A stretch of DNA of 63,200 nt, counting the filler, from Hyphochytrium catenoides (taxonomy: Eukaryota; Protista; Hyphochytriomycota): NCBI GenBank assembly GCA_900088475.1. It is 16 parts of 16 records of this genome, joined end to end, with 100 filler letters (N's around TTAATTAATTAA, not from the genome) between each part and the next. Parts side by side here need not be neighbours in the genome. Positions count along the whole stretch, not along the records: positions 9,840 to 28,412 come from FLMG01002504.1; 15 more parts are not named here. The stretch is one strand, 5' to 3'. Shown piece after piece: positions 12,069 through 27,840 of the stretch (position 1 is the stretch's first letter; each line of letters begins with the position of its first letter). Both the position numbers and the translations under genes were made by a program. The notes beneath the pieces are model-generated. The model had not been told where the DNA came from. It did no database searches and was given only the letters and a program-made list of their open reading frames with translations.

Positions 12069-14246
12069 TCAGACAGAGAATCGGCGTTGTGCTCTGTCTC
12101 TCAACTTCCTGCGCCGGCGCTTCCTAAGGTTGTTGCCGCTGGCTATTGAGCTCGTTGCAGCATTATCCGTGGAAGATGATGGCTGCGAAGCAGCAGCAGA
12201 GGAGGACGACGAAGATGAGGGAGAAGACAGGTCAGCCGCAGCTTGTGGAGAAGGAGCAGGAGATGAGTCAGACGCTTGTCCTGCTACGATTCCTTCTTCT
12301 CCATCTCCTCCATCTTCTGCTTTCTCTCCTTCCACTGCCGTCTCTTGCGCTGCCTGTACCAAGCCTCCTTGAACCACAGCAACGGCTATCGCGGTCGCTA
12401 CTCCAGCAAGAACGCTAGGGACGAGCACGTACGCAAGCCATTTCTTCTGCTTAGCTGTCAACTTAAGGCCCTTCTTCTCCACGAGTCGTTGGACGAAGGC
12501 CAAAGACCTGCTATACTCTTGTGGAGACGGCTCTTTGATCTTGCGCTTCCAGACGCGTCCTAACATCTGCTGAAGCTTCGCCACAGCGGGAGAAGGTGGA
12601 GACGCCGGAGAAGCAGAAGAAAAGGGAGAGGAGCTGGTGGTGTCAACAGCTGGAGCCTCCTGGATCGCTCCGTCGAGAGCCGCCGTGTTCTGCTGCTGCT
12701 GGCTTTCGGGATCTGTGAAGCCGATGCGGAAAGTGTGCGTCGCCGAAGGATCAGCACTAGAAGCTTGTGCTGCTGCTCTTGCTGCGTAAATAGCGTGTAT
12801 GTCTTTGAGATTCTTCTTAAAGTCCCCAGTTAGAGCCCTAATGAGTGCGCCATTGAAGGTCTGAACAATCTGCGACAGCCAATCTCCACCTCCTTCTAAT
12901 ATAGGCCATGGAGCTTCTGACCCAGCGCTTGACAGTGGCGAGTCTCCTGGCAGCTCAATGAGCCGCATAATCTGCGCACCGATTGTGAACCCAGTGAGAT
13001 CTCCCAGACGTGTCCCGACGGCTTTCGTGTTCGTCAACCACGCTGCCGGTGGCAGAGGCTTATCGAGCAGAGTGTCCACCAGTGCATGCGGCATCCTGCC
13101 CAGAGCCCCCGAGACCACGTCGCTGAGCTGCCGATCGAGGAGCCGGAGAAGAGCTCTATTCCAGAATGGCAGTTGGGCATAATAGTCCGGAGAAAAGTCG
13201 AGGGCATAGCCCTCTGGCAGGTCTTCTACTAACTTGAGAAGCAGTCTGGCGGCATCTTTGGAGTACTCTTTGCCCAGCCGTGCGCCCCAGTACCTTGAGA
13301 GTCTGAGCAGCAAAGGATGCAGAGCCAAACTATAGAAATAGCCTCCCACATAGTGCAAGGGAGAGACGACCAATGGAGAGACCACCTTCCCGTATATCAG
13401 CTTTCCTCCTTGCCACGCTGCCTGCCCTGCAGCCGTGCGTATGCGGCTTGTCAGAGTGTTGGCTCCTCCCGCTTGGCCGTCCAGACTCTGGGCCTTGGTT
13501 TCCACGAGCTGTGTTGAGGACGATGCTCCTCCGTCATTAGTGTTAGCGGAGGACGTGGTCCCGTCAGCTATCACCGCTTTGGGAAGCCTCGGGTTCGCTG
13601 GCTTGAAGGCAGGGTATCGTGCAGATACAGAGCGGGGTTTCCGCATCCACGCACGATAGAGGGACAGGATATCCGGAGGTCCTCGGCCAAGAGTAGAGTG
13701 CGGAAGGCCATACCAAGCAGCAATTCCACTGGACTTCTTGGCTCCACTTGTGCCACTTGCCCTCAGCCCTGGTGCCCCACCGAGACGTCGCCACCTCTTC
13801 GCATCATGGGATGCTGGACGCTTCTCTTCTTCCTCTGTCTTCGTAGGGTCTCGAGGAAGAGACGTGTGTCCGTGGCCCTCTCTTCCATCGTTTGATAGGA
13901 GAGAGAGACCATGATGACTCTCTTCCTCTTCGTCTATTCCGAGGCTCTGCCAACAAGAGGAGACAGGGATGGTCTCTTCTTCTTCCTTTGTTTCTTCGGT
14001 AGACAGTAGAAGACAGAGCTCCTGGACTGCTATCTCTCTAGCTCTCTCTTCAGAGAGAAGAGAAGGGATAGCTTCTCCATCTTGCGCAGTAGCCTGAATC
14101 CACTCTCTTCCCTCCTCAGTTCTAGAACAAGAGATGGAGGGGGCATTTGACACGAGAAGAAGAAGAAAGAGACTGCAGAGAGCAACACAACGATAACCCG
14201 AGAGACAGTAGGACCTCATGGCCCGCGCTTGTGCCAGATGATTCAC
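12069..14246 (-). CDS. Uncharacterised 725-aa protein with signal peptide, C-proximal TM helix and basic tail
   Basis: Uninterrupted 2.2-kb ORF free of microsatellites. N-terminal ALCSLFLLLLVSNAPSIS, TM WLAYVLVPSVLAGVATAIAVAVV, tail LRKRRRRKLR. No family recognised. Confidence 0.75.
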   Translation of the reverse strand: MNHLAQARAMRSYCLSGYRCVALCSLFLLLLVSNAPSISCSRTEEGREWIQATAQDGEAIPSLLSEERAREIAVQELCLLLSTEETKEEEETIPVSSCWQSLGIDEEEESHHGLSLLSNDGREGHGHTSLPRDPTKTEEEEKRPASHDAKRWRRLGGAPGLRASGTSGAKKSSGIAAWYGLPHSTLGRGPPDILSLYRAWMRKPRSVSARYPAFKPANPRLPKAVIADGTTSSANTNDGGASSSTQLVETKAQSLDGQAGGANTLTSRIRTAAGQAAWQGGKLIYGKVVSPLVVSPLHYVGGYFYSLALHPLLLRLSRYWGARLGKEYSKDAARLLLKLVEDLPEGYALDFSPDYYAQLPFWNRALLRLLDRQLSDVVSGALGRMPHALVDTLLDKPLPPAAWLTNTKAVGTRLGDLTGFTIGAQIMRLIELPGDSPLSSAGSEAPWPILEGGGDWLSQIVQTFNGALIRALTGDFKKNLKDIHAIYAARAAAQASSADPSATHTFRIGFTDPESQQQQNTAALDGAIQEAPAVDTTSSSPFSSASPASPPSPAVAKLQQMLGRVWKRKIKEPSPQEYSRSLAFVQRLVEKKGLKLTAKQKKWLAYVLVPSVLAGVATAIAVAVVQGGLVQAAQETAVEGEKAEDGGDGEEGIVAGQASDSSPAPSPQAAADLSSPSSSSSSSAAASQPSSSTDNAATSSIASGNNLRKRRRRKLRDRAQRRFSV

Positions 14247-15186
14247 TTCGTCCGAACGAAGCTAAGACTCCGCTTAGAACTACGGGCTCGCCCTCTTCCT
14301 CCAGCGCGGGAACTGAGCGCCATGAAGATCACCAAAGATAAAGTGAACCCCGGACAACAGGAAGAGAGACATCGCCAATATGGGAAAGAGCGTAATCCTC
14401 AGTGGTCGCGCCACTTCACTACCTGTCAAACCCTTCCATCGGCGCTCACGCGCAAGGAGAGAACCTCCGTAAAGGGTAGAAAGCGATCGAGAAACCGAAT
14501 AAACGCAGACTTGCAAGGGAAAAAAAGATAAGAGAGGAGTCAGGCTACACTGGGAGATAGAGAGAGGAGATAGACGAAAGGCGAGAGTAAGAGGACTTGA
14601 AGAAAGAAAGAGAGAGAGAGANNNNNNNNNNNNNNNNNNNNNNNNNNNNNGAGAGAGAGAGAGAGAGCGAGAGAGAGCAAGAGCAGAGAAGGGGTGCTAT
14701 AGGGAGTAGGGGACAACCGTTGTTAAGTCAGATATCGTGATGCCCAGGTCAAATCCCGGAGAGAGGAGGAGATTTCATGGGAAGCTTGCCTATCATCAAA
14801 ACCTCCAGCGACTCGATCAAGGAGACGCGGTGGCCGTCAATGGAAGGAGACAGAGGGAAGGGAAGTGACGGCGGGCGGATAAAAGGACCGGTGAATAGGA
14901 ACTGATAACATGAATAAAAGGCACGGTAGGAGATGCGTTTGAAGTTTGATGGAGAAACACGAGAGATTGATGAGAGAAGGAACTGGATGGTCTATTATTG
15001 TCGATACCAGCGGCAGAAAGAACAGCATCCGGCGCAGAAAGAAGAGACAGAGAGAGAGAAAGAGAGAGAGAGAGAAAGAGAGAGAGAGGAAGCAACGAGA
15101 AGATAGAATTCAGAAAGATAGGAAGGATAGACATACCGAGAGTGATCAAGAAAGGAGAGAGAGCTAGTAAAAATGACAAACGAGGA

Positions 15187-18800: not shown

Positions 18801-20184
18801 TGACAACCTTCGCTCACCAGCATTCAGTGCATTCTCATCCTCGCTCATCTTCTCTCCTTGGAGATTTGAGTGGCTTCTTTTCTTCCATCACTCTCTTCTT
18901 CTTGTGTGCTCTGCTTTTACCTATAAGATTATCGTGATCATAAATGATCATGAAGAAGAAGAAGAAGAAGAGAGAGAAGAATCGATTCTTAGTACTACTA
19001 CTGTTTCTTCTTCTCTCTCTTCTGTTGTTGTTGGCCACACTAACTTGCTTCTCCTTCATTCATCATCATCGCTAGCTATATTTCCCGTCTTTGCTGGTGG
19101 TGGTGCTGCGGTTGCTGGTACCGTCGTGACGCCTGACCTCCTCCTCCTCCGTCCTCTGCGGGCGGCTCCTCCTCCTCTTGTCTGTTGTTCATCATCAACA
19201 TAGTGGGTGGTGCGTGGGTCCTTCCTCATCGGTCTCCCTAGTACTATTATATAATATAGGAGGAGGATAGAGAAGGAGGAGGAGAAGAAGAATGCACTTG
19301 GTGACTCACTACTTTGGGGGAAAAAAGCAGCGACATCGATCATCGTTAAGAACGGAGAGAGAGAGAAGAAGAAGAGGAGAGAGGAGGAGAAGAAGCGCAA
19401 CAATCAACAAGAAAGGGAAGGGGAAGAAGAAAAGCTTGATGACCTTGTGCGTCGTCCGTGTAAGGCTTGTACACACCGAAGAGGTGTATTGCGAGAATAT
19501 ATGGTTGTATCAGTGATTGGGTAGAAATTAAACTGAGGCTTTAGCTTCTCTTTCCTTCGACTCCTGTCTCAATCGCTTGACTGGATAGCGCTGTGATTAG
19601 TATGGGTAGACCGTTAATACGACAATATAGAGAGCTCTAGGGCCTTGGGTAGATTGGGGGATGTCAACGGCTGATGCATTCAAATTCAAATGGGAATGCA
19701 GAAGGGAATGATCATTCCAAATAGGGATGCCTAGGGAATATTGAGTGAAGGATTAAAGAGTTAAACGACAAAGGATAAATAGGAGGGATGCAGTTGAAAG
19801 CTTTCGTGAAAGACTCTGTAGACATTATTAGGAATAGTATCAGCCTTATTCTATGTAGCCTTAGAGCTTGTTTGTCAGTTCACTGTCTCTCGAACTTAGG
19901 TCTCTCTCTCTTGTATTCTTATCTCAGTGGACTCTTCCTCTCACCAGCATGTTATCTTTTAGAATTTTATACAGTAGAGTATCATCTCTCTTTCCTCTCC
20001 CTTTGCTCTTCTTTCTCTGTCTTTCTCCTTGCTTTCTCTCTCTTCTCTCTCTTGCTTCCTCTCTCTCCCTCTATCATCCGCCCATGCCCTTGGTCTTCAG
20101 GTTACTGTAGTTCTTCTCATTGTTCTTCCTCTTTTCTCTCTCCTCTCTCTCTCTCTCTCGCTCTCTCTCGCTCTCTCTCTCTCG

Positions 20185-20225
<41 letters not shown>

Positions 20226-20614
20226 CCTCTCTCGCTCTCTCTCTCTCTCTCTCTTTTTCCCTCTCTTCCTCTCTCTCCCTCTCTCTCTTAAACTCTTTCC
20301 TCTCAGTCTTTTTCTCTCTTGCTGTCTTGCTCTCGTGCGCCCTCTTGAGATGGCATGGGCGGCGGCATTGCGCTGCGTGGTAGGAGTAGACTCTTCTCGC
20401 TATCTCTTCCCTTCCTTTCTCATACTTCATGTCGCTGCACTGACTTTTACAAAGCGGACACGTCCCTATTAATTTGACCGGAGAGAGGGAAAGAGAGAGA
20501 GAGAGAGAGTTAGGCAAAGGGAAAGCCACAGAGAACAGCGTCTTTCTTGTTGGCTGTCAGAGCTCCACAGCGCTGAAAACTCTCCTTTAAAAGAGCTTCA
20601 CTCTTCGTGTTAGC

Positions 20615-23600
20615 ATGGCGTCTTATAACATTGAGAAGATCCTGGATAAGCGAACCCGAAAGGTCAGAAGCTTTCATCTCCCTCTCCAACTCTCTCTCTC
20701 TCCCTTTCTAATGGTGCTTCCACGTAGAGCGTGGACGAAGCTTTAGATGTCTTCTCTCTCCCCAAGTCTTCCCTCTTTTTCCCCCACTCGGTGTTGCTTG
20801 GTGTGCAGGGGAAAATAAGGGGAACTTCTCTTTCTCCTTCTTTCTCTGTTCTCTCCTTCTCCCTGACTCAACCCTGCACTTTATCTCTTTAGGGTCTCAT
20901 AGAGTACTTGATTCAATGGGAAGGCTATGATTCGAGTGAGAACACGTGGTAGGTCCTGCCTCTAGCTCTTTCTTCCGCCTAGGCTTGGCAAAGATAAGAA
21001 AGCCTCTCTCTCTCATATTGTTATCCCTTTCTGTCCTTCTCTCACTACCTTTCTCTCTCTCTTGTCTCTCTCATCCGCTTGGATTGCCTGTTTCTCTGCT
21101 GTTCGTGTCATTTTTCTCTAGGCCTGTTTGCGGTGTTGGCTATCACTTTCCTTTCTTCCTCTCCTTCTTTCTTTCACTCCGTGTATCTCACGCGCATTAC
21201 CTGGCACAGGGAGCTGCGCAAGGACCTTATCCGCGATGGGTGCGGTGTGGCCATCAAAGAGTATGAGAAGAGACTCAACAACAAAGGAGGTCAGATCAGC
21301 CGTCTCCTCTCTTCCTTTCTCCAAAGCTCTTCTTGCATAGTCACACCTTCTTCGTTGAAGCGCTCTGTCAGTCCCCGGTCACTAGCCCATCAGTTGATCC
21401 TTCCTTTGCACGGTTGCCTCTCTCTCTCGCTCTCTCTCTTAGTCTTCCTTTGTTCCTCTCCCTTTGTCTTCCCTTGCTGTGGGGCCCGGTAACACTCTAT
21501 TCTAACTGTCTCGTCCTTAGATGTGGTGGAGACTTCCGTTGTAAGCGTCACTATGGCTGCGCCAAGTCAAGAGAAGACTCCGAAAGGTTTGCCTTGAAGA
21601 GCTCTCATCTCTCTATGTCTTCCTCTCTCTAGAGTCCACAATGGCATGAGGAACGGAAAGAGACTTAGCTCTCTTACTGCCTTGTTTGCACCGATCACCT
21701 TTCTCTTCTCCTCCGTTGCAGATAGGCAGCAATGCGTTCTTCCCTTCACCTTTCTCTTCGTCTCAGTCGACAGACTTCGGCCACCACCTATTTTACTGGC
21801 TTAACTTTGTTAACAGATGCATCTCGTCTCTTTGATCTTTTCATCAGTAGTCCCTCCTCCTAAGCTGCGAACCTCTTTTCCGTATAGCTGCGCGCGGGCG
21901 GACTCCCAGAAGATCCAAGGTAGAGAAGTCTCCGGGTCGGACTCCTCGTTCTCCCTCGCCAAAGGCTGCCACCCCCGCCAAAGCGCGGCGTTCTGTCTCT
22001 AGAGGAAGACAGTCCGCAATCGCCGCAGAGCCTATGGTCACTCCCAAGGCAGCCAAGAGAGCGCCTACTCCTAAGAAGAGAAGAAGCACCTCTCGTCCTC
22101 CGCCGCCGCCGCCAGCCGTTGAGGAGGAGAAGCCTCCATCTCCACGTACATCTCCTCGTGTGAGCGCGAAGGTCGATGCAGAGGTAGGAAGTGAAACAGT
22201 CAGAGAAGATAGTGCCTGTGCACCTCAAAGAGACTAAGATAACAGACACACAGAGAGAGAGAGCACATCTAACTAGTCCCGCAAAAGGGTAAGAGCTTTA
22301 TCGATTGAGAGAAGAGGAAAGAGCTCGAAGGATAGAACTTCGAAAACCTGCGACATAGGAGGAGGCAAAACTCTAAACTGTATCAGGGAAGATCGGGAGA
22401 GATCTGGACATCTATGGCTGGCTGCTTCTCATTGTAACTTCATCTCCCAGAGTGCTCTCACGCTCAAACCGGTCACACGGCGGCGCAGTGAGAAGGAGGA
22501 AGAGGAAGCTGACGAAAAGTCACCTGCGGAAGAGATGGAGAGTGAAGAGAAGCAGCCTCAGGAGGAGGAACAAGAGGGAGAAGTCGGAAAGGAGGGCCAT
22601 CCCGTCTGGGAGTGGGATGTTCTGGCTGATCGCTTCGGTGCCTTCTTGCAGGCAAGTATTACACTCTTCCACTGTTCTTGCTTAGAAAAGGTGGTGGCCA
22701 TAGTCGAGCGTGCACTTGGTCATTTTCTCTTTCTTTACCTCTTTCTATCAATCTCTCTCTGCATATTCTTCCTTGGCTTAACTTTTTGTTGTCCAGAGCA
22801 AGAAGAGAATGGAGGTTTGGCTTCTTTTCGGGGTCACGGTGAGCTCCATGATCGCCTACTTCATCTCCCACAACCTTGCCTTCTTTATCGGAGAGGACGG
22901 TGAGTTGTGCCTCTCTTTTTCGTTCAGTCCCTGTCCATTTTGCTCCTATGTATCTCGCCTTTTTACTCTGCGTAAAGTTCTTGATAAGAAATTGTTTGCC
23001 TTTATCGATAGCTCTGTTTATGCCCTTGCCAGCAGGATATCAGGGCAGGAAAGTCGCTTCTTTGCCATAATTGGTGTTTCCTTTGTTAGACATAAAGAAC
23101 TCCTCGTCCCGTTAAGCTCCCCTCTTATCTCGTTCCCTTGCCCCTGCGTGTATCTGTCTATCATCTGTCATTCTTTAGGACGGAGAATGGACACCCACTT
23201 GGCCGTCGCCATCCTCACGCGCACCACCTCCATTCCTCCGCTGGCCCTGCTGGTTTTACTCTTAACCACACGAAACGGGAGGTAGCCACCAGCCGTTTCT
23301 CTCTCTCTCTTCTTGGTTCTCTCTCTCTCTCTCTAGGTCCTGGTTATATGTCTCGCCAATTCCTATCGGCCTTCGTGGCCCAGGTTATCTTGGATGCAAA
23401 AGACGGACTCTTATTAGGCTTGGATGTCTGCGTCACAGTGGCTCTACTCTCATTCTCCCTGCTTTATCCTTTCCTGACTGTGTTAATGTGTTCTGCTTAG
23501 GTATTTCTTTTGCAAGTGGCTGTCGGTAGTGTTCGTTTGGAGGACCGCTGGAGAGGTTATTCTCCTTCTTCCCGAGTACCGCTCTTCCCCTGGGCTCTTC

Positions 23601-24564
23601 CACAACGCTGCAGTGCTTGCGTTTGGTCTCTCCTACATTGGTGTCGTAGTCTCTATCGCTTGGGTAGGGTTTCTTTGTCCTAGTAGTCTTCCTCTGCCTC
23701 CGCAGACCCTTGTCCTCTGTCTCTCTTCACCTCTTCCTTTCCTCGACTTCGCTGTCAATGTCTTCTGTCATCCTCCGCAGACCCTTCCTTTCCTCCATCT
23801 CTGCTCTCTCTTTCGTCTCTTCTTTTTCTTGACTTCGCGATCTACGCCTTCTATTACAAAGTAGCCTCGGGTCTAATCCTTAGTCTCCTCTGTGACGTAA
23901 GCAAACTATTAACTGCCTGCCCTTGTCTCTCTCCTTGGGTCCTTGCTGTGCCTTGCAGCTCGTTGCCGCAGAGAAGAATCGTGCTGATGCCTTGATGCGC
24001 GTGTTTGCTGCTTTTGGAGCCACGTTACTAGTCATCTCCGATATGTGCGTACCTTTGTCCCTCACACTGAGCTTGCTTGGCTCCCTGCAGGGCGTGCTAA
24101 CGACACCTCTTGCTCTGTTATTCCTCTTTGTCTCCCTATAGCACTCTTTTCCTGGTAAAGCAGTCCAGCAGTCAGCAACAGGCTCGCTTTTTACTGATGA
24201 GTCTCTCTCTGGTGAGGATCACGCCAGCAGAACAGCTCCCTTGCTTTCTCACTCCCTTGCTCACTAAATACCTGCACGTCTATTCTCCTCTTCATCCTCG
24301 CTTCTCCAATCTCTACCGTTTGTCTATCTGATGAACCTTCTCTTCTTTCATGATCCCTACATTTTCACTATAACCATGAGACCCCGTCCTCCAATATCAC
24401 TTGAGAGAGAGAGAGAGCCATTGACTCATTGTGACTGATACCCTCTCTCTCTCTCTTTTCTCTCTCGCGCGCTTGCCCTGATTCCTTCCGGCTCTTTCTC
24501 GGTGCAGATGGTGTTGACGATCGCCGGACTGCAGGAAAGGGCACCCAAGAAGAAAAAGGCGTAG
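20615..24564 (+). CDS. Chromodomain + basic S/T-P linker + six-TM (YhhN/TMEM86-like) membrane protein, 442 aa, C-terminal KKxx
   Basis: Twelve phase-consistent exons: 20615-20662, 20893-20948, 21210-21289, 21521-21586, 21888-22183, 22451-22651, 22797-22899, 23179-23281, 23501-23663, 23959-24044, 24142-24211, 24508-24564 (1329 nt). Starts MASYNIEKILDKRTRKGLIEYLIQWEGYDSSENTWELRKDL and ends ERAPKKKKA*. One GC-AG intron is required. Confidence 0.85.
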
Positions 24565-26266: not shown

Positions 26267-26615
26267 CCTCGTCCTCTCTCTCTGTCTCTCTGTCTCTCTG
26301 TCTCTCTCTGTCTCTCTCTGTCTCTCTCTCTCTCTCTGTCTCTCCTACCTCTAACCTTGAAAGCACATCATTCAGGGGAATGTAAGTCGCATCTCTCTCT
26401 CACTTCAACTCCATGCTCCTCCGCCCATTGCTGTCGCCACGTTACTCTGGCCACCGCCCAGATAGCCCAAAGAGCTCGGCCAAGACGCCACTCGAGACGT
26501 CTCTACTCTCAATCAGAAAGGNNNNNNNNNNNNNNNNNNNNNNNNNNNNNNNNNNNNNNNNNNNNNNNNNNNNNNNNNNNNNNNNNNNNNNNNNNNNNNN
26601 NNNNNNNNNTCAGCC

Positions 26616-27840
26616 ATGGAGTCCTTGCGCCAGCTAATAAAGGTGCCATAGTTGTTACCTCCTCTCTCTTCTATCCCCTGCTTTCTCTGGCCTGCCCTCT
26701 CTCTCTGCCTTTCCCCCTCTCTCCCTCTCTCTCTTTCTGTCTCTCTCCCTTTTTCGCTGTCTGCCTGTCTCTCTCTTCTCTCTTCTCCAGCATTATGATC
26801 TCTCTCACACTCTCTCTTGTTCTCTCTTTCTCTTCTCTCTTCCGTCGCTAATCTCTAGCGTTATGCTCTCTCTCTCTCTCTCTCTTCCCCTCCCACGCTC
26901 TCCTTTCCTTCCTTCTTCTCTCCTTACCCATTGTCTTTGCCTTATGATTTCTCTTTGTATAAGAGAGTCTCTCTCCCTTCTTGAGTCTTCCTCTTCTCTT
27001 CTCTCTTCCTCTAACTCAGAGACGATACTCTTCTCGCTCGTAGGAAGATCTTCCCGCCTATCTGAAGTCTCTCCCCGTCCCTTGTTGCCTGGGGGAGCTG
27101 CAGCAGCTAAAGAGAGAAGAATGGATGCAGCTTCTCCCTTTCATTGTCACTCTCTCTCTCTTACTCTTCTTCCAGCTGTACGCGCTTAACAAGCTTCTCT
27201 CTCCTTCTCCCAAGCTCGAGTGTCCTCTCCCTCCTCCGCCTCGCGTCAATCGCCGGATTCAGCTAGAGAAAGAGAAGATTGTGGACACCTGCAGGGTGAA
27301 AGACATCGAGGACATGGGGAAGAGAGTCTACTGCAGGTGCTGGAAGTCCAAATCGGTAGGAATACACTCTCTCAGCGATGGTTCATCTTCTTCTCTCTCT
27401 CTTCTGTCTCTTTCTCTTTCGCTCTCTGCCTTTCCTCGCCTGACCATCCCTAGCATTCTGATTATGTTCTTGCTCTTCTCGGTTGCTTGCTTGTCCACCT
27501 GTCGAGTATCTCTCTCTTCTCTTCACTTACACCTCTTTCACTTGTTGCTTCATTATGTTCTATGTCCTCTCTGTCCACTTTTTCTCTCTCTCCTTCTCTC
27601 CTTCACTGCGTCTCTCTCTCGCTGTTCCTCGTCTCATTCGTTTTCTCTCCACTCTCCTTTGAAACAATCCTCTGTCTCGTCTTTCCCTGGCACTTAGATT
27701 CTGCAATGCGCGCTATCATTTCCCCTCGTCGCTGACTTTCCTTCTCCCTTCCGCAGTTCCCGCTGTGCGACCAGAGCCATGTCAAGCATAACAAGAGCGT
27801 GGGAGATAACGTTGGTCCTCTCCTCGTCAGCAAGGAATAA
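26616..27840 (+). CDS. CISD2: CDGSH iron-sulfur (NEET) protein, CISD2/NAF-1 type, 140 aa
   Basis: Exons 26616-26642, 27044-27355, 27757-27840. [22 protein letters not shown]...EEWMQLLPF, a TM helix, then [31 protein letters not shown] (3Cys-1His ligand set). Confidence 0.93.

Follow-up and report, generated by a model that had tools for sequence, protein, structure and literature searches.

We found that the plus strand of a 63,200-nt window of Hyphochytrium catenoides DNA (16 joined parts of assembly GCA_900088475.1) contains, at positions 20615-24564 of the window and within the part taken from FLMG01002504.1, a gene that can be spliced into one continuous frame, in which an N-terminal HP1-type chromodomain is followed by a basic linker, an acidic stretch, and a hydrophobic half with about six predicted membrane helices. 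Read as one gene, it would encode a 442-residue integral membrane protein acting as a membrane-anchored reader that keeps methylated heterochromatin in place at the nuclear rim, a reading to which we assign a probability of about 0.35 (overall, 0.3 to 0.35 for the tethering of heterochromatin to the inner nuclear membrane). Most eukaryotes keep their silent chromatin at the nuclear rim, but its anchors are known in few lineages: vertebrates use LBR together with lamins, worms use CEC-4, and yeasts use Lem2 and others. Antigenic variation in apicomplexans is under the control of perinuclear heterochromatin, as is the clustering of centromeres and telomeres, and a literature search for an apicomplexan heterochromatin anchor found none. 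If the proposed reading is correct, this gene is a concrete candidate for rim anchoring and shows in minimal form how one protein could tether chromatin to a membrane; even without a tethering role, a chromodomain on a polytopic membrane protein would be an unusual architecture.

An independent rebuild of the gene model gave 12 exons on the plus strand that join into 1329 nt, comprising 442 codons and a TAG stop with no internal stops, in agreement with the continuous 442-residue spliced frame claimed in a preliminary description of this DNA. The ATG lies in a context with A at -3 and G at +4, and an in-frame stop is located nine codons upstream, at 20588. The locus is made up of short exons and CT-rich introns of about 100 to 300 nt, 10 of the 11 with GT-AG borders, intron 6 alone being GC-AG. 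Intron 5 (22184-22450) is rich in purines, with A 0.36, C+T 0.38, and a GA run, whereas the other ten are 65-73% C+T.

The chromodomain is encoded by the first three exons. Exon 1 (20615-20662, donor AAG/gtcaga) carries the start codon and residues 1-16, including Y4; exon 2 (20893-20948, acceptor ctctttag/, donor GTG/gtaggt) carries residues 17-35, including W25, Y28, and E32; and exon 3 (21210-21289) carries the C-terminal helix of the domain, to about residue 61. With these exons joined, residues 1-61 scored 55.4 bits in Pfam Chromo (PF00385), for which the cut-off is 25.1 (E value 5.8e-15), residues 4-56 spanning positions 1-53 of the 53 in the model. Since the full match appears only once exons 1-3 are spliced, it also validates the junctions between them. 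The top solved structure was the chromodomain of Drosophila HP1 (1kna, E value 5.8e-12), followed by CBX5, CDYL, MPP8, and Polycomb-class chromodomains. In the 1kna alignment, Y4, W25, and Y28 fall on HP1 Y24, W45, and Y48, and E32 falls on HP1 E52; the N-terminal chromodomain with three cage aromatics that had been described earlier is thus borne out. The domain is probably able to bind methyl-lysine. It is nearest to HP1 and CBX5 (E values 6e-12 to 1e-10) and keeps their whole aromatic cage, but the predicted protein differs from the HP1/chromobox group in having neither a chromoshadow domain nor a dimerization module, and its C-terminal half would be embedded in the membrane. In Pfam, which like the PDB was searched exon by exon, a weak piecewise approach, none of the exon pieces gave a second chromo-like match that could be a chromoshadow domain, and the C-terminal half consists of hydrophobic helices.

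The linker (residues 62-182) begins in exon 4 (21521-21586, residues 62-83, with canonical AG and GT sites) and continues in exon 5 (21888-22183), which encodes a basic, proline-rich sequence with no Pfam family. The whole linker has 28 Lys/Arg against 10 Asp/Glu residues, 18% proline, and 11 serine/threonine-proline (S/T-P) sites in 121 residues. Among its motifs are TPRR89, SPGR98, TPAK112, and TPKK144, together with KKRR146, which resembles a classical nuclear localization signal (NLS). Exon 6 (22451-22651) encodes the acidic stretch (residues 183-249, 21 Asp/Glu against 9 Lys/Arg) up to the GC donor and has no convincing Pfam family. Both the basic linker with its four S/T-P motifs and the acidic stretch had been proposed in the preliminary description, and all of them could be located. 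The domain ahead of the first membrane helix has a mass of 28.4 kDa, a pI of 9.6, and no signal peptide, and under the rules of membrane insertion a domain of this kind should stay in the cytosol or nucleoplasm. For these reasons, the in silico evidence supports an N-terminus that faces the cytosol or nucleoplasm. The S/T-P sites may be phosphorylated, although those followed by Lys or Arg could equally serve as SPKK-type DNA-binding motifs. The mitotic phospho-switch suggested earlier is speculation, the idea being taken from the biology of open mitosis; apicomplexan mitosis is described as proceeding with the nuclear envelope present (PMC7343853). The style of the genome may recall that of tissue-cyst-forming coccidia, and in an organism with such a mitosis there would be less of an LBR-like reason for a switch that releases chromatin.

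Residues 250-442 show six Kyte-Doolittle hydropathy peaks (1.68, 1.75, 1.46, 2.27, 2.12, and 1.63), whereas no value above 0.47 occurs anywhere in the N-terminal 245 residues. Exon 7 (22797-22899) encodes SKKR and then helix 1, exon 8 (23179-23281) helix 2, exon 9 (23501-23663) helices 3 and 4, exon 10 (23959-24044) a loop and the first part of helix 5, exon 11 (24142-24211) the end of helix 5, a Gln/Ser-rich loop, and the start of helix 6, and exon 12 (24508-24564) the end of helix 6, the tail QERAPKKKKA, and the TAG stop. The six hydrophobic segments announced earlier are therefore present, the third of them being marginal (1.46, with R332 and E336 inside). The tail has Lys at -2 to -5 and hence at both -3 and -4, the spacing of a dilysine (KKxx) signal, as had been noted. 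On the other hand, the claim that both termini are cytosolic or nucleoplasmic stood only in part: the N-terminus is supported by the lack of a signal peptide and the basic 28-kDa domain, whereas the side of the KKxx tail is uncertain because the marginal helix 3 makes an even helix count insecure. Several polar or charged residues are buried in the predicted helices (R298, K323, R332 and E336 at i, i+4, H352, N353, and D400), which hints at a functional membrane domain and not a plain anchor.

Because CT-rich DNA translates into runs of Leu, Ser, Phe, and Pro that mimic hydrophobic segments, the coding status of this half needed a test of its own. The hydrophobic frame might have been nothing but translated pyrimidine-rich DNA, with splice sites picked to hold it open, given that stop codons are scarce in such DNA and that the introns of this very gene yield 154 hydrophobic windows in 2599 translated residues. 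A synonymous-codon log-odds score, trained on an open reading frame (ORF) of 724-725 amino acids elsewhere in the window, gave 0.015 for exons and -0.115 +/- 0.039 for introns but did not tell the three frames apart. However, the six membrane exons joined in the model frame (582 nt) show three-base periodicity (chi2 43.6, p 9e-8) much as the N-terminal half does (chi2 45.4, p 4e-8), exon 7 by itself giving p 2e-4, while periodicity is absent from all 11 introns (p 0.09-0.94) and matched 582-nt intron chunks reach a chi2 of at most 15.0. As the periodicity persists after concatenation, the frames across the six exons are mutually consistent. Composition also separates the two classes of sequence: C+T content is 0.52-0.62 in exons and 0.65-0.73 in introns; Ala, Gly, Val, Ile, Met, and Trp make up 48% of the predicted helices against 20% of the hydrophobic windows translated from introns, and Leu, Ser, Pro, Phe, and Cys 36% against 69%. 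In addition, introns 7-11, which lie within the membrane half, have canonical GT-AG borders at each of their ten splice sites. The membrane half is genuine coding sequence and not CT-rich intron; the non-coding explanation is largely rejected, and we regard it as highly improbable. Intron 7 (22900-23178) has 279 nt, equal to 93 codons, with no in-frame stop, and was considered as retained coding sequence, but its base composition does not vary with codon position (p 0.62) and it was discarded as such. Its retention would place 93 residues between helices 1 and 2 and keep the frame.

In the proposed arrangement, the N-terminal 250 residues (HP1-type chromodomain, disordered basic S/T-P linker, and acidic patch) would face the cytosol or nucleoplasm, and the C-terminal 190 residues would form about six membrane helices outside the recognized families. 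The protein would insert in the endoplasmic reticulum (ER), its dilysine end would retain it in the membranes of the ER and nuclear envelope, and the 28-kDa extraluminal domain with its NLS may bring it to the inner nuclear membrane. An extraluminal domain of this size, whose NLS sits on a long and disordered linker, agrees with what work on yeast Heh1 and Heh2 has reportedly shown about traffic to this membrane. Once at the rim, the chromodomain would hold methylated nucleosomes, and the basic linker, through its S/T-P-K/R sites, would add DNA contacts. [quoted passage not shown] No tether between chromatin and membrane would then be known that is more direct, and the protein might be the missing heterochromatin anchor of a lineage without lamins (parasites similar to apicomplexans), evolved independently of LBR and CEC-4. 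We put this form forward as doubtful.

Several points weigh against a fused tether. The junction of the two halves is the sole non-canonical splice site in the model, and this GC-AG intron is the only link between them. An ATG at 22809 (M254), 12 nt into exon 7, directly precedes helix 1, has SKKR alone before it in the membrane half, and could start a stand-alone membrane protein. No functional theme common to both halves was detectable, no relative with the fusion was found in searches with exon 9 (against 1.84 billion proteins and metagenomes), and the membrane domain, searched exon by exon, had no family match. As to the location, KKxx is a signal of ER residence or retrieval in general and is not specific to the inner nuclear membrane, and with five helices the tail would face the lumen, so the side of the C-terminus is uncertain. 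Finally, chromodomains may bind non-histone partners, as in chloroplast SRP43. The points on the junction would be accommodated if there were two products, a soluble chromodomain protein from exons 1-6 (by read-through or with another 3' end) and a six-helix protein of about 189 residues starting at ATG 22809, with the fusion as an artefact of the model or a minor isoform. We consider this unlikely in view of the junction itself. Exon 6 itself contains no stop codon, and unspliced read-through gives 84 more codons, with a stop at 22901-22903 in another frame; these 84 residues are intron-like and end inside the first coding exon of the membrane protein. The halves are separated by just 145 nt (intron 6, 22652-22796), T-rich and aperiodic, with a strong acceptor (ttgttgtccag/) behind a polypyrimidine tract, which leaves no space for a 3' untranslated region and a promoter. 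The GC donor (CAG/GCAAGT) follows the consensus at all positions but the C, the pattern expected of genuine GC-AG introns. Moreover, when all in-frame pairs were enumerated, an alternative canonical donor was found at 22691 (AAG/GTGGTG), 39 nt downstream, which with the same acceptor leaves the frame intact and lengthens the protein by 13 residues; the GC donor is therefore not essential to the fusion. Altogether, a single fused gene seems probable from the sequence. The rival donors of intron 6, GC at 22652 and GT at 22691, could also give isoforms 13 residues apart (ASITLFHCSCLEK).

The points on location and ligand would instead fit a fused membrane protein that is no tether, residing in the general ER or another organelle, with an enzyme or transporter as its membrane domain and with the chromodomain and linker bound to a methylated or basic non-histone partner or to nucleic acid, in a regulatory or targeting role. 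The general nature of the KKxx signal, the polar and charged residues within the helices, and the known chromodomains with non-histone ligands would all agree with such a protein. Nevertheless, the aromatic cage and E32 fit the histone-binding HP1 class best, as do the top structural matches (HP1, CBX5, and CDYL), the linker resembles a nuclear DNA-binding sequence (NLS-like KKRR, S/TPKK-type motifs), and the size of the extraluminal domain would still allow passage to the inner nuclear membrane. We judge a fused protein without tethering function to be improbable, though slightly less so than two separate products, and the membrane-anchored chromatin reader is retained as a tentative interpretation.

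The identity of the membrane domain was sought at the level of families and of single relatives. Exon pieces gave only chance-level matches in Pfam and PDB (RHH_5, RPN2_C, and DUF6144). An exhaustive phmmer search with exon 9 (54 amino acids) against 1.84 billion representative proteins gave 0 matches, the query itself included, and a metagenome scan with the same exon gave 600 pattern matches, of which 0 were confirmed. The proteins of the source organism seem to be absent from the collections searched. An LLVISD motif (GATLLVISDITLF) had suggested a YhhN/TMEM86 lysoplasmalogenase (PF07947), but a hidden Markov model built from the members of 200-212 amino acids among 120 relatives of Escherichia coli yhhN scored the membrane half at only 3.0 bits, and of 2000 shuffles made of this half, 116 of the 1978 scored were equal or better. 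In Pfam, PF07947 did not match any exon piece. This identity is rejected, albeit weakly, the profile being narrow and limited to enterobacteria. A sterol-reductase domain likewise had no Pfam match in any exon piece by the weak piecewise search, and the half has about six segments in 190 residues versus eight.

Literature searches covering Apicomplexa and beyond found no described protein that joins a chromodomain to membrane helices, in line with the earlier statement that no characterized protein combines a chromodomain with multiple membrane passes. That a reader can work at the nuclear membrane is already known, since the chromodomain protein CEC-4 of Caenorhabditis elegans, located at this inner membrane, anchors chromatin methylated at histone H3 lysine 9 (H3K9), which proves direct recognition of a histone mark by a protein of the nuclear envelope (PMC4783997); the new element would be the direct fusion of the chromodomain to the membrane. 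CEC-4 resembles the protein described here in that its N-terminal chromodomain reads methyl-lysine, while the rest of the protein targets the inner nuclear membrane independently of lamins (PMC4783997). However, CEC-4 is described as membrane-associated and not polytopic, whereas the present protein would be embedded by about six helices. CEC-4 and LBR are the nearest working analogues, and in its logic the proposed tether is nearer to CEC-4. LBR, in which the reader domain is followed by a basic linker that is phosphorylated and then by a polytopic membrane domain (PMC5617974), parallels the present protein in the order of parts: both would have a methyl-lysine reader, a basic phosphorylatable linker (Ser-rich in LBR), a polytopic domain, and, given an even helix count here, a short nucleoplasmic tail. 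Nonetheless, the reader in LBR is a Tudor domain instead of a chromodomain, its linker is rich in arginine-serine (RS) instead of S/T-P, its membrane domain is a sterol reductase with eight hydrophobic segments instead of about six in 190 residues without a family match, and LBR binds lamin B.

In apicomplexans, for which no lamina component was known as of a 2017 review (PMC5333908), the Plasmodium falciparum protein PHD2, a subunit of the GCN5 complex, also has a chromatin-reader-type domain together with many predicted membrane helices (12), and its authors proposed a possible association with the nuclear membrane (PMC7145593). In contrast to the chromodomain protein, PHD2 has PHD fingers that lack the residues binding trimethylated H3 lysine 4 (H3K4me3) and belongs to an acetyltransferase complex, and the two sequences are unrelated as far as tested. 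Other chromodomain proteins of the group are TgChromo1 (TGME49_268280) and PfCDP (PF3D7_1140700), which bind trimethylated H3K9 (H3K9me3), TgChromo1 marking the heterochromatin of centromeres and telomeres, which lies at the nuclear periphery (PMC3302879; bioRxiv 10.1101/2021.09.13.460021); unlike in the protein described here, the published accounts of both mention no membrane helices. The chromodomain proteins catalogued in Toxoplasma gondii are CHD1, TgChromo1, TGME49_269760, and MYST-A (PMC8638923, table S1), and the chromodomains of TgChromo1, a much larger protein, and of TGME49_269760 sit at or near the C-terminus (PMC8638923).

An Rfam scan of the gene context found no RNA genes, and a tandem-repeat scan found only an array upstream of the gene, a (TC)n microsatellite of about 77 units in a CT-rich array with a 24-nt period (20006-20288), about 330 nt upstream of the start codon. 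The single-exon ORF of 724-725 amino acids used to train the codon score lies at 12069-14246 on the minus strand. It has a hydrophobic N-terminus and Ser/Ala/Glu-rich stretches, gave no Pfam families and no relatives among 5.8 billion proteins, and looks like a lineage-specific, possibly secreted protein. Runs of N at 14622-14650 and 26522-26609 mark gaps in what is a draft assembly. Downstream of the chromodomain gene, two plus-strand exons (27227-27355 and 27757-27837) belong to a CDGSH iron-sulfur (mitoNEET-like) gene, which reads YCRCWKSKS before its intron and carries the signature as CDQSH instead of CDGSH (Pfam zf-CDGSH, E value 0.015 with the first exon alone).

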